Made by a program: the position numbers and the translations under genes. A DNA stretch of 64,000 nt, taken from the NCBI RefSeq assembly GCF_036321535.1, contig NC_087443.1, positions 67,766,001 through 67,830,000 on the forward strand. The letters run 5' to 3'. The notes under the pieces are model-generated. The model ran no database searches. It was not told the origin of the DNA and saw only the letters and a program-made list of their open reading frames with translations. This stretch comes from Camelus dromedarius. Its lineage: Eukaryota. Positions 11,878 to 57,874 of the stretch are shown here, piece after piece; position 1 is the stretch's first letter, and every line of letters starts with the position of its first letter.

Positions 11878-12040
11878 AAAATCAGGGAATCTTTTGGGGG
11901 TGATGGAAATGCATTGTTTCATACAGCTGTGTAGAACTGTATGCAACTGTTAAAACTCATTGAGTTATATACTGTAACTAGATGCAGTTTATTACATGTA
12001 AATTATTCGTCTATAAAAATGATAAGAAAAAATATAAAAA
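11878..12040 (+). mobile_element. L1M 3' terminal fragment
   Basis: ttttgggggtgatggaaatg...aaaactcattgagttatatac...aaattatt followed by an A-rich end. Confidence 0.7.
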
Positions 12041-42659: not shown

Positions 42660-44076
42660 ATCCAATGCAATCCTTATTTAAATCCTAGGAGGCTGTTTTA
42701 TAGAAATCGACAACCTAACTTTAAAATTCATAGGAAAATGCAAAAGACTAAGAAGAGCAAAAACAGCCTTTAATAAGAAGAATAAAGTTAGAGGACTAAT
42801 ACTATCTAACGTGACTTATTGTAAAACTGCAGTAATCAACACAATATGGTATTGGTGTAAAGATAAATAGATCAATGGAAGAGTACAGAAATAGACTCAC
42901 ACATATATAATCAATGAATTTTCCACAAAAATGCAAAGGCAATCCAGTGGAAGAGGCATAATATTGTCAACAAATGGTGCCAGAAAAATTGGTTATCTGT
43001 ATTTAAAAAAAAGAATTTATATCTATAGCTTGTTTGCACCATATGTAAAAATTAATTTAAAATAGGTCACAGATCAACATGTGAAACCTAAAACTACAGA
43101 ACTTCTAGAAGAAAGCACAGGAGAAAATCTCCGTGACTTTTAGTTAGGTAAAGATTTCTTAGATCTGACACCAAAAAGACAAGTCACACACACGAAATAG
43201 ATAAACTGAACTTTATCAAAATTAAGAGCATCTGCCTTTCAAAAAGCACCATCAAAAGAACAACAAAAATAAATAAATAAAACAAACAATGGGAGAAAAA
43301 TATTTATAAATCACATATCTGATAAAGGACTTGTATCCAGGATACATTAAAAACTCTCAAAACTCAATGATAAGAAAACAAGCAATCTAACAGAAAATGA
43401 GTAAAAAATTTGAACCGACGCGTCACTAAAAAATATATATAGAGAGAGAGAGAGAGAGAGGGAGAGATTGTAAATAAGCACAGGAAAAGAAGATCAGCAT
43501 CATTAGTCACTAAGGAAATGCAAACTAAAGTCACAGTGAGATACCACCTCACATCCAGAACGTCTAAAATTTAAAAGACTAACCATACCAACCATACCAA
43601 CCGTTCCAAGTGCTGATGAGGAGGATGTGGAGCTCCTGGAGCTCTCCTACACTACTGGTGGGAATGCCAGTGCTACGACCACTCTGGGAAAAAGTTTGGC
43701 AGTTTCTTAAGCTGTTAAACACATAGCTATTACTTGACCTAGCCATTCCGCTCTTAGGTAATTACCCAAGAGAAATGAAAGCCTGTGTTCACACAAAGAC
43801 TTACACACTAATGTTTAATGCAGCTTTATGTGTAATAGCTGGGAACTGGAAACACAAATGCCCGCCAGCAGGTGAATGGATCAACAATTGATGTTTATCC
43901 ACACAATGCAATATCATTCATGAAATAAAAGAAGAGCAAACTATGGATGCACCAATCAGTATGGGTGAATCTCAAAATAATTATGCTGAACAAAAGAAGG
44001 CAGATTTCCTTTTTAAGTACCATACTGTATGATTCTATTTAAAGTTCTAGAAAATGCAAACTAGTCTATAATGATA

Positions 44077-44316
44077 CCAGAAAAGAATTACCATGTAATA
44101 TTTAGAGAGTTTGGGTTCTCAGCAAAACTGTTTTATACGCTAAGGTCTCAGAAATAAGACTACTAAAAATAATGATACCAAGATTGTCAAGGCCAGTGAA
44201 TTCCCCTGCACTGGAAAAAGTACATAACCACATTTGCACACTAAAGAGTGAGATGCAGGCAGAATAAAAATGGGTGGGAGGTGGGGGCGGGGCTACAAAG
44301 GAGAATCACTGTAACT
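44077..44316 (-). repeat. Inverted local duplicate of 56346-56588 inserted into an L1 3' end
   Basis: The reverse complement of 56346-56578 aligns to 44088-44316 (4 mismatches in the first ~118 nt, ~90% overall by eye). Flanked by ctataatgata (44066-44076) and ctgtagtgata (44315-44325). Confidence 0.93.
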
Positions 44317-44560
44317 GTAGTGATAGAAACCAAGTTCAGTGATTTCCTGAGGATTGAGGTCTAACGAGGGGCAGAAGGGAGAAATTAAAATAGACATGAA
44401 GAAGCTTCCGGGGGTGATGGATGGGTTCACTATCTTGACCGTGGTGATGATTTCACAGGTGTACACTTATATAAATTGTATCAGTTGTAGACTTTAAATA
44501 TAGGTAGTTTATCACACATCAATTATACCTCAATAAAGATGTTTAAAATAAAAAATAATT

Positions 44561-45335
44561 TAAAAATACACATAGGATTGCAAAAGAGCCCAGTTATATT
44601 GAAATGTAGCTATCAAAATATTTTTTAAATCTATGATATAATCACCTACATGCCTTTTTATTAAGGCAGGTCTAATAACTATTGCAATTTAGAAATAATG
44701 ATGAATACATATGCTATTTTGAGGTATTCATAGCCATTATAAGGTGACATGAAAATATCTGATTTCTAGCAACATTAAAGTCACAGTTGCCAACACCAAG
44801 TAGCAAAGCCAAGAAACAGAGAAAGAAACTGAGCTTTACTCACAGCATCAGAGCCTGATGATCTGAGGTTTGATTTCTATGCTTATGTCTGGTTTTAGTT
44901 TGACGATTAGAGTTAGCCTCATAAAGTGGATGATTTAGTTTCTCAACTTTTTCTCCATTCTGAAAGTCTGTTTACCTAATATGGGTAATACATTTGGGCC
45001 TAACAGTTACTTAGAGAATTATAGATTTTTATTTTTTAATTATATTTTATTATAAATTATTTCCACTATGTAAATAATATGTGTCAGTTATGACACATGA
45101 AATAATTAAGAATGTTTAAATATAAAGTTAATTTTTTCAAAAGGCCACAGTGACTGCTAATACTAGTTTGTTGCCCATATCAAAAAGAAAGAAAGAAAGA
45201 AAGAAAGAAAATTTCAGTGAGAGTTCAGTAAAAATAAAAATGCAATGTTTTTCCTTAAAACTCATAACCCCTTGGATTATGTCCATATAAAGCCCCCCTC
45301 GAAAGTCTTAGGGATCAGCTCAGGTTAAGAGGTTC
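44561..45335 (+). mobile_element. hAT-Charlie-type MER element, 3' part, with a further ~340-bp insert
   Basis: cataggattgcaaaagagcccagttatattgaaatgtagctatcaaaata...ggtctaataact...actgctaatactagtttgttgcc...aaatttcagtgagag...caggttaagag. Confidence 0.7.
45183..45210. repeat. (AAAG)n microsatellite
   Basis: aaaaagaaagaaagaaagaaagaaagaaaa. Confidence 0.9.
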
Positions 45336-48300: not shown

Positions 48301-48627
48301 TATCTTAGCTAAAAACAACCCAAAGTTCATCTATAGCAGAGTACATAAATAAATTCATATTCATTGTAATATGTGTATGTATATATTTGCAGAATATAGT
48401 GACTAAAATTATATTCATTGTATATTATAAATTTATATCCCAGTGTATACTGTGGACTATTACACAGGCATGAAAAAGAAATACTGCTATATTGTTGAAT
48501 CTCTTGGGCATAATGTTAAGCAAAAGAAGCCAGAACTCAAAGAGTACAATATCATATGATTCCATTTCCGTGATGTACACAAAGCTATTCTAATGCCATA
48601 AAAGTCAGAACAGTGGTTGCTTTTGGC

Positions 48628-54760: not shown

Positions 54761-56345
54761 TCAAGCACGGTCCCACATCTCAGAGGGGACCTACTAATTC
54801 GCCATAATTCCTCCCCCTCAAAGGGAACTGATGCCCAAAAAGTGATTTATATAAACCGAAACTTTCTTTTTACGCTCCCCAAGAAGAATGAAGTAGGAAG
54901 TGCCCATGAGAGAGATAACCTAGTCTCTTAATTTTTGAGGTTAAATGCAGATTACTACTATCAACACAGGGATGGCTGAAGGGAAGGAGAAAACAGAGAC
55001 GAGAAACAGCAGAAGGGCAGTGGATGAGGAGGAGGAGAAGGAAGGGGTGCTAAGGGACAGTCTCCTTATAGTCCAGGACCTGGGAGGGAAGAGGTCACAG
55101 CTTCTCCTCCAATCTGCCCAACCCCCAATATGCAAAACTGCTAGGCTCAGGCTCAAGTCAGGACTGGTCTGGTTTCCTCCCTGTGTTTAGAACCCCGGCC
55201 TTTGGGGAAGAACTCTTGGTCCTACTAACCAGGAGTCAGTCATCAGCACCTATAGAGAGAAGTAGCCTCAACACCTGGACCCAAGCCAACTGTTGTTTAA
55301 CATTTCACACCAAATCTACAAATTACATGTCCACGTTGTGGGCCAATCTGACTTTTTTTTTTTTTAATATTATATTACCTTGCTTTTCGCCAATTTCAGT
55401 TTCACACCCTCCACCGTTTCTCCCCTATCCTGGCATCACCTGAAGCCCTTTCAGAGACTCAGGGGTAATTGACCCTCTGAGATCTTGCTAGTCTCCCCAA
55501 GCCTTTTTATGACACAAAGCAGTGAGATTGAATGTGGCATGTGTGCTATCATGGAATAACTTTTAATTGCTTAATTAAATCAGAGATTTAAAGGAGGAAG
55601 GATTCAAGAGTTTCCTTTGAATGAGAAATATAAAGATATGCCGGAATGGATACTAATCATTGGAAGAAAAACCCTTAGTGTTTACACATGATAAAAATGC
55701 AGACCAGGACATTAAAAACAACAGGTAGACTCTTTAAAATTTTAATTCAGTATATTTATGAGCTTTTACTATCCAGGTAAGTCCTATAAAGGACATAGAA
55801 GTCCTCATTATCCAACTTAATTCACATCAAGATTAGATTAAAATAAAAATGCCACTGTACAGGACAAAGAAATTACCCTAGAATTGAGTTACTATAAATG
55901 TGTTCCAGTTTAAGCAAATAAGACCTTAAAACAGGCCTTAGGAAAGTCTATGCTGTACACTGAGTATACAGGTGACGATTAGCAAGCGTGAAGAGCTATG
56001 GTCATTCGCTACATGTGTAAATCTGAAGGCAACCAAGTGAAAAGACCTCAAAAAAGAAAACTGTTAAATCCATTTGTACATGGATTTAACAGTGAAGCAT
56101 TTCATTCTTCATGTTTTTACTTGGTGTCTTGAAATAATCCTTTCTGTCTCTACTCACCCTCTTAGANNNNNNNNNNNNNNNNNNNNNNNNNNNNNNNNNN
56201 NNNNNNNNNNNNNNNNNNNNNNNNNNNNNNNNNNNNNNNNNNNNNNNNNNNNNNNNNNNNNNNNNNNNNNNNNNNNNNNNNNNNNNNNNNNNNNNNNNNN
56301 NNNNNNNNNNNNNNNNNNNNNNTTCTGATTAATATTAAAGTTGGG

Positions 56346-56588
56346 AGTTACAGTGATTTTCCTCTGTAGCCACCCCCCAACCCCCCCACCACATTTTAAT
56401 TTTGCCTGCATCTTACTCTTTAGTGTGCAAATATGGTTACACATTTTTTTCCAGTGCAGGGGAATTCATTGGCCTTGTCAATCTTGGTATCATTATTTTT
56501 AGGAGTCTTATTTCTGAGACCTTAGCGTATAAAACAGTTTTGCTGAAAACCCAAACTCTCTAAATATTACATGGTAAATCTACTTTCG
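56346..56588. other. Unique upstream sequence that is the source of the inverted copy at 44077-44316
   Basis: Direct reverse-complement alignment. Not recognisable as a repeat, and next to N run 56167-56322. Confidence 0.85.
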
Positions 56589-57874
56589 TTTGGAAAGCTT
56601 AGGTGCTGATGGGCCAGCTGAAAAGCAGGTGAGATGTTTTTTAGGGATGGGTGAAATAATTTAGTACATCATGGACTCTAGACCAACACTGTTCCTAACA
56701 GGCAATTTGCTAATTTTTACTGATTTCTTTTTTTCTGGTTCTTTTTATCCCCTTTCATGTTGTAGATTCCAGTCCACTTCTCATTGGATATTTGCAAGAA
56801 AATGAGCGTTCTTGCTCCATTTTCCAGGTACACCGTGTTTTGGGACCCAGGCCTTTTCCCCTTTAACATAATTTTCTTCCCCATTTTGTAGCAAATCAAT
56901 CTGCTCCCCAGGAGAGAGCCTAAAAATCAACAAATACCTGCCTCAAACCTCAAGTTTTCCATCTCCTCCCTGAGGTCTTCCGGCATCAATGGGGTTAGCA
57001 ATTTCCTGCCAGAGCCATCTACATCTTGATTATTTGGTCAGTCTTTCAGGGATTTCATTTCACACCCCCCTTCCAGAAAGACTCCAGCACCACTGATCCC
57101 AGGGGTTGGTAAACTTTCAGTTTTATTTTCCCTGGCTGTGTTAACGCCCAAACTTTTCACCTCCAAAGTCAGAAAGGACTTTGAATTCTAGTTCATTTCC
57201 TACCACCTCCAACGTCAGTTTAAGAAAAAAAAAAAAAGACAACGCTCTACATTGAAAAGAATCATGTATTTTTCCTTAAGGATATTTTTAATGCCTCTGA
57301 CAAACACTACAGTATTTGATTGTTTTTTGGATAAAAAGTCATCTTGGCATATTTATTCTAGTGAGGCTTAAGATTTAGTGAAATGATTCACTATTAATAA
57401 ACAAAAAGGGGAGGGAAGACCTCGTGGGTTAATAGTTTCTTTCACTGCAGATGACCAGGAACTTTGCCCAGCCCTCCACTTCCCCAAGCTCTCTGAAAGT
57501 GGAGGGTTGATCTCTCTTTTTGACCACTTCTGTTACATCCCGCCCAAGGGTGGCTGATTTCACTGCTGGCCTAACCACTAAGCACCCCCCCACCTCTTCT
57601 TCGCAATACTCTCCTCTCCTTCTTTTCCCCTTCCTTAAGGCTTATTTCTAATATTTCTGAAGTGTACTTTTTCTGGGCCTCTCCCCATCCCCGCCCCCCA
57701 AGTGGGCTTTCCTTCCGCCTTCCTCAGCTCGGATTCCTGACTCGGTCGCCACCCCCTTTCCCTCCTCTCGTACTCCGCATTGTCTTTCTGAAGCCTCCCC
57801 CCTCCCGGAGCGAGTCCCCGTTCCCTCGCCCAGACTCCCGGGCTCGCACACACTCAGCGCAGGCCTCTCCCCCT

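Follow-up and report, generated by a model that had tools for sequence, protein, structure and literature searches.

Templated Insertions in Mammalian Genomes

The closest described relatives of the locus reported here are the repair-mediated duplications, which were recognized by Pace, Sen, Batzer and Feschotte in 2009 as inserts of DNA not belonging to a transposable element (TE) that lie inside TEs (PMC2671141). The criteria of these authors call for an insert of at least 50 bp, TE fragments that abut within 30 bp, one other copy in the genome, and a sequence that is not itself a TE, a retrogene or an L1 transduction (no poly(A/T) of at least 5 bp at an end). In human TEs 1,136 such insertions were counted, with the donor less than 5 kb away in 824 and on the same chromosome but farther off in 58, and the class was also found in cow (202 cases) and dog (192 cases) (PMC2671141). 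The inserts have a mean length of 162 bp and a maximum of 619 bp, and their breakpoints are characterized by microhomology of 2-9 nt and by filler of 1-68 nt (PMC2671141). Target-site duplications of 4-21 nt accompany 6 of the 39 proximal cases that were inspected, and a poly(A) tail is found in no proximal case (PMC2671141).

Another group of short templated inserts comprises the templated sequence insertion polymorphisms (TSIPs) of Onozawa and Aplan, which are divided into two classes. Three marks are needed for class 1, namely a poly(A) tail, a poly(A) signal situated 10-30 nt upstream and a target of the TTTT/A type (PMC5110952).

The present analysis concerns a stretch of 64 kb of dromedary DNA, hereafter called the window, in which a short segment of unique DNA occurs twice in opposite orientations, the second time inside an ancient L1. 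The best reading of this arrangement, to which we assign a probability of about 0.7, is a single old DNA-templated duplicative insertion of nearby chromosomal DNA in the course of break or fork repair. The features on which the argument draws are collected in Table 1.

Table 1. Features of the acceptor and donor loci, in window coordinates.
Feature	Position	Strand	Remark
Host L1 left of the insert: decayed ORF2 C-terminal end and start of the 3′ UTR	43610..44065	+	
Left copy of the 11-bp target-site duplication, CTATAATGATA	44066..44076	+	
Inserted copy (acceptor)	44077..44316	+	Clear donor homology 44084-44316
Ambiguous junction stretch, CCAGAAAAGAA	44077-44087	+	Diverged donor, filler or further L1
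Interior 12-mer, ATAATGATACCA	44169..44180	+	Identical to left-junction 12-mer 44068-44079 and donor 56485-56496
Right copy of the 11-bp target-site duplication, CTGTAGTGATA	44315..44325	+	
Host L1 right of the insert: remainder of the 3′ UTR, with CCTCAATAAAG and an A-rich tail (~44545-44570) at its end	44326..44570	+	
Old L1 3′ piece, in-window proxy for the empty site	48490..48627	+	Collinear across the insertion point
Donor segment	56346..56588	-	Clear homology 56346-56581; unique in the window

The Inverted Copy and Its Donor

When the window is compared with itself by blastn, positions 44084-44316 of the + strand give one gapped match to the reverse complement of 56346-56581. The match has an identity of 90.7% over 236 columns (E 1e-88), and the segment occurs nowhere else in the 64 kb. 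The coordinates and counts of the initial annotation, which had described this inverted copy from sequence alone, are essentially right; its count of four mismatches in the first ~118 nt is likewise correct, the positions being 44118, 44162, 44187 and 44196. A search for inverted repeats delimits a first pair of arms at 44084-44219 and 56446-56581, which are 136 nt long and 96% complementary, and two weaker pairs of arms carry the match on to 44316 and 56346. The spacing between the arms is 12,029-12,226 nt.

Gapped global alignment of copy and donor yields 232 aligned positions with 17 substitutions (12 transitions and 5 transversions) and 5 indel columns, corresponding to a K2P distance of 0.078. 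It had been stated that most of the differences fall in a G-rich tract. Differences are indeed present there, but with gaps allowed they account for 6 of the 22 differing columns, so that "most" was an overstatement. A second cluster consists of four transitions in 5 nt, at 44220-44224 in the copy and 56440-56444 in the donor. The copy reads GTACA at this place and the donor, on its minus strand, ATGTG; the CA/TG pair within the cluster fits a two-way decay of an ancestral CpG.

Divergence is not evenly spread along the alignment, as 5 of 136 positions are substituted in 44084-44219 versus 12 of 96 in 44220-44316 (Fisher p 0.019). This unevenness is not predicted by a simple model in which all of the copy has one age, and it counts against a single capture. 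It could be due in part to slippage in runs of A or G, to CpG decay, to repair synthesis of low fidelity or to later partial conversion.

The acceptor locus is found in independent animals. The stretch 43700-44700 is present in 20 sequencing runs of this species, which belong to 7 studies. Leaving aside the possible source sample, there remain 17 independent runs of 6 studies, which contain 0.96-0.98 of its sampled 31-mers. The insert is touched by 28% of the sampled words of this stretch, and of the 210 words that fall entirely within the copy only 13 also occur in the donor. An assembly artefact is ruled out, given that the copy occurs in independent animals and that an empty allele could not score so high.

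Two similar segments in one window might also be members of an unrecognized low-copy interspersed repeat, or might both go back to a third locus, and they would then lie close together by chance. A divergence of ~7-9% would suit two copies of a moderately young family, and the duplication around the acceptor is of the sort that a mobile element leaves. Moreover, the copy count covers the 64-kb window, which leaves room for a low-copy family or for a third, true donor elsewhere. However, the 64 kb hold two copies only, and a second copy would fall within 12.3 kb by chance with p ~0.012 for a family of 1000 copies and 0.0012 for one of 100 copies. No flanking duplication is found around the 56-kb donor segment, the insert possesses neither terminal inverted repeats nor a tail nor a small-RNA-like head, and on its left side the homology has a ragged limit and not the sharp one expected of a repeat. 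Weak evidence in the same direction comes from two 22-23-mers common to both copies, which have 0 exact matches in 241 million metagenome records. Metagenome records often carry host DNA. On balance, a repeat family or a third locus is very unlikely to be the source of the pair.

Other known kinds of mobile sequence were considered as well. Neither copy matches an Rfam family, and the RNA fold of the donor is no better than that of shuffled sequences on either strand (z 0.06 and -0.04); a retrocopy of a small structured RNA was rejected on these two grounds. A DNA transposon was rejected because no terminal inverted repeats were found in the insert. A duplication of 11 bp would suggest Mutator-like elements, which are not known in mammals. 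A Helitron was also rejected, since Helitrons leave no flanking duplication whereas the acceptor has one. Exact look-ups of four open reading frames of the window near the site (57, 53, 196 and 111 aa) returned no gene on record.

The Interrupted L1 and the Direction of Copying

The 44-kb copy is the acceptor, because it is this copy that interrupts the L1 and carries the flanking duplication, and it is sited in the 3′ UTR of a decayed L1 on the + strand. Copying the other way, with the 44-kb segment as donor, was rejected for the same reason, as both the interruption of the TE and the duplication are at the 44-kb copy. The nature of the host element is indicated by an ORF piece at 43775-43891, which matches residues 1184-1220 of the 1275 residues of human L1 ORF2p in a PDB sequence search (best E 0.04), all four of the PDB matches listed for this piece being ORF2p. 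A second PDB sequence search gave chance matches only, and three short L1 ORF pieces found no match in Pfam. On the other side, the element closes ~230 nt beyond the copy with an L1-type 3′ end and an A-rich tail; CCTCAATAAAG followed by an A-rich run is what we take to be the usual end of an L1, by its likeness to L1M consensus sequences.

When the insert is removed and one copy of the duplication is kept, the host flanks are collinear with the L1 3′ piece at 48490-48627 (nhmmer E 0.0022). The pre-insertion site obtained in this way is a proxy from a diverged paralogous L1 piece and not a family consensus. By this proxy alignment, one L1 is split into two abutting fragments by an insert of at least 50 bp. 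It counts against the single-capture reading that the empty site is drawn from the paralogous piece and the L1M 3′ consensus, and not from an orthologue. Decayed + strand L1 3′ end pieces lie both at 48490-48627 and at 11886-12029, and the two were detected only by nhmmer or relaxed blastn with the 3′ part of the host L1.

Junctions and Flanking Duplication

An 11-bp duplication had been noticed around the insert, and it is present in an imperfect form, CTATAATGATA on the left and CTGTAGTGATA on the right being identical at 9 of 11 positions. Random pseudo-insert positions reach 9/11 in 2.7% of cases if their boundaries may be shifted as freely as those of the insert. The duplication is therefore modestly significant alone, and it takes the collinear L1 flanks to make it convincing.

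The two junctions differ in sharpness. On the right, donor and copy agree through ...TCACTGTAACT, after which the donor continues with CCCAAC and the copy with GTAGTGATAG; the dinucleotide CT forms both the first two bases of the right duplication and the last two of the donor homology, which amounts to a microhomology of 2 nt. The left junction is ragged, with CCAGAAAAGAA at 44077-44087 facing CCAAACGAAAGTAGA in the donor. Diverged donor, filler and further L1 fit this stretch equally well, and further L1 would lengthen the duplication. The extension of weak homology to ~44077/56588 described in the initial annotation is thus one of three possible readings.

The insert itself begins with CCAGAAAAGAATTACC... 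and ends with ...TCACTGTAACT, and it has no tail. The earlier claim that poly(A) is absent is borne out, for both strands, by reading the ends of copy and donor. A nick site of the L1 endonuclease (TTTT/A type) is also missing, as had been claimed: the top strand of the duplication starts with CTAT, which follows a GT, and the bottom strand with TATC, which follows a TC.

The left junction contains a further peculiarity, as the 12-mer ATAATGATACCA occurs there, inside the insert and in the donor without a single difference. In 20,000 dinucleotide shuffles of the insert, a match of 12/12 has P 1.5e-4 and one of at least 11/12 has P 1.1e-3; allowing for ~40 junction windows, p is ~0.006, and it becomes ~0.04 should the A at 44071 have arisen later by mutation. 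The left junction may in this respect be a stepwise record of repeated microhomology invasion. The single-capture reading would then be refined into a multi-step template switch with two successive invasions of the donor by the broken L1 end, which would anneal to the internal donor near-match ATAaTGATA, add three nucleotides (CCA) and be released, after which it would re-anneal 100 nt upstream at the donor TTTCCA and be extended to the end of the copy. Both chimeric products and products of multiple invasion have been described for repair-mediated duplications (PMC2671141). However, the observation of the 12-mer was made post hoc and 9 of its 12 bases are plain L1 sequence, and we regard the refinement as possible but doubtful. 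The 12-mer could also be a product of chance, aided by a later G-to-A change at 44071.

Proposed Mechanism and Age

The initial annotation had proposed a templated repair insertion, inverted, from a nearby donor in cis and younger than the host L1. This proposal is supported by the interruption of the L1, by the flanking duplication and by the lack of marks of retrotransposition. We infer the following course of events, including the polymerase pathway and the age. A break or a stalled fork would have occurred in the L1 3′ UTR at ~44066-44076, and a free 3′ end would have primed on unique DNA 12 kb off on the same chromosome, in the opposite orientation. Some 235-240 nt would have been copied, from donor position 56588 or 56581 down to 56346, while the donor stayed intact, and the new strand would have returned to the broken L1 through the 2-nt CT match. 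The 11-bp duplication would be explained by fill-in of staggered ends or by re-entry 11 nt behind the exit point. The pathway may have been synthesis-dependent strand annealing or microhomology-mediated template switching. If a single capture took place in this manner, the pre-insertion locus is expected in non-camelids as a single site of the CTATAGTGATA type. The duplication is also a point against this reading, as 11 bp is usual for L1-driven reverse transcription and a flanking duplication is a minority feature of repair duplications.

The insertion is younger than the heavily decayed L1 in which it lies. Dividing the K2P distance between two lineages gives ~0.039 for each. With 1-2.2e-9 substitutions per site per year, which is a general mammalian range, the insertion would be, very roughly, 18-39 million years old, and it probably predates the divergence of the Old World and New World camelids or falls near it. 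The uneven divergence along the alignment makes this a soft estimate.

The Promoter Neighbourhood

As a result of the insertion, an inverted repeat pair of 233 nt, 12 kb apart, lies upstream of the promoter of a developmental gene, putatively TCF7L2; no effect of the pair is indicated. A CpG island extends over ~57.5-61 kb, with a GC content of 0.54-0.80 and a CpG observed/expected ratio of 0.5-1.0. Five masked blocks between 58055 and 59493 are interleaved with the island. A motif search with the TCF7L2 exon 1 peptide found none of its words in the translation of the unmasked window, and the exon is likely masked.

It had been suggested that a regulatory module was duplicated to a new position, and this idea is unsupported. 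The copy ends at donor position 56346, that is, 23 nt short of the masked block 56167-56322, and because it stops there the supposedly conserved block was not copied. A function of the copy is neither needed to explain its presence nor indicated.

Nature of the Template

The L1 break could also have been patched with RNA. A reverse-transcribed transcript from upstream of the promoter, or any transcript of the 56.3-56.6 kb region, would have filled the break as in class 2 TSIPs; in a variant of this explanation, L1 ORF2p would have placed the copy, lacking a poly(A) tail, at a staggered nick. Patches derived from RNA have been documented at breaks (PMC5110952), and the 11-bp duplication lies within the 7-20 bp of L1-type events. 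The donor region is, in addition, represented in RNA-Seq contigs, where the words sampled from 56323-57500 are found at a fraction of 0.39-0.67 in three runs of a single study, and it is probably transcribed today. However, these contigs give neither the strand nor the exact place of the transcript and could reflect carry-over of DNA. As for the records themselves, the study with RNA-recorded runs is labelled reproductive system. Several probable RNA runs contain 0.54-0.80 of the sampled words of this stretch, and parts of it are also found under two other species labels.

Several features of the insert speak against RNA. There is neither poly(A) nor a site of the TTTT/A type. A poly(A)-signal hexamer exists, AATAAA at 44263-44268 in the copy and ATTAAA at 56396-56402 in the donor, each directly followed by the G-rich tract, but the hexamer was not used as the 3′ end of the copied molecule, because the copy continues for 48 nt beyond it, through the G-rich tract, without an A tail. 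Class 2 events are devoid of a target-site duplication, which is present here (PMC5110952). In experiments, the donors of RNA-derived inserts were scattered over 18 of 24 chromosomes and were not preferentially nearby, so that a donor 12 kb away in cis would be unexpected (PMC5110952); this distance argues for a DNA template. The two RNA variants, taken together, are unlikely.

An argument from the copied strand, according to which it is the strand of a divergent transcript from the TCF7L2 promoter, had been put forward in favour of RNA. It carries no information: a tail-less double-stranded insert holds both strands, and its orientation says nothing on an RNA template because there is no tail or other strand-specific mark. 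The more specific version of this idea, in which a nascent upstream antisense transcript of the CpG-island promoter served as repair template in cis in the germline, is very unlikely. If true, the locus would be a natural fossil of break repair for which a local transcript provided the RNA template.

Comparison with Known Classes of Insertion

The camel insert and the TSIPs have in common a short templated insert and the retention of the donor (PMC5110952). The flanking duplication is a point of likeness with class 1, and the lack of a tail and the ragged, microhomologous junctions are points of likeness with class 2 (PMC5110952). In both classes, however, the inserted sequence is derived from RNA of distant loci, whereas the camel donor lies 12 kb away in cis (PMC5110952). 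With 11 bp, identical at 9 of 11 positions, the duplication exceeds the minimum of 5 bp for an L1 retrocopy or a class 1 event, while its very presence sets the insert apart from class 2. Class 1 and L1 retrocopies differ in turn by their tail, their TTTT/A target and their signal 10-30 nt upstream, none of which the camel insert has.

Replication-based template switching (FoSTeS / MMBIR) is usually put forward for copy-number changes of kilobases to megabases, or for template switches of less than 100 bp within a fork. The camel insert resembles the products of such switching, and short template-switch mutations, in its nearby inverted template and its 2-nt return microhomology; furthermore, re-entry behind the exit point would give the duplication, and error-prone synthesis could explain the uneven divergence. 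The scale of the insert is different, and the camel data do not separate replication from break repair.

The best reading of the camel insert is that it is a repair-mediated duplication. It is a non-TE insert of at least 50 bp, ~235 bp long, inside a TE, with an intact donor on the same chromosome and no poly(A), and having no tail, terminal repeats or Rfam family it falls outside the TEs, retrogenes and transductions that Pace et al. set aside. Its breakpoints show the signatures of the class, with the 2-nt CT overlap on the right, the 11-nt ambiguous or filler stretch on the left and a duplication within the range of 4-21 nt, and the class occurs in non-primate mammals including cow and dog. 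It differs from the class in its donor distance of 12.0 kb, which is beyond the 5 kb limit of confident classification and counts against the single-capture reading: the case falls in the same-chromosome group of more than 5 kb (n=58), which was not confidently classified by the authors (PMC2671141). A further difference is that the single other copy is known here for the 64-kb window. The camel, moreover, lies outside the survey of 2009.

The event is thus ordinary and not unusual, since its class was described in 2009, and it is atypical only in the 12 kb that separate donor and acceptor. On this reading it provides one more case in which germline break or fork repair copied a short piece of nearby unique DNA, from a group of mammals, the camelids, that the survey did not include. 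Because it is clean and datable, the insertion can be of some modest use as a marker in camelid phylogeny. Its longer donor distance, together with its flanking duplication, adds to features that are under-described for repair-mediated duplications.
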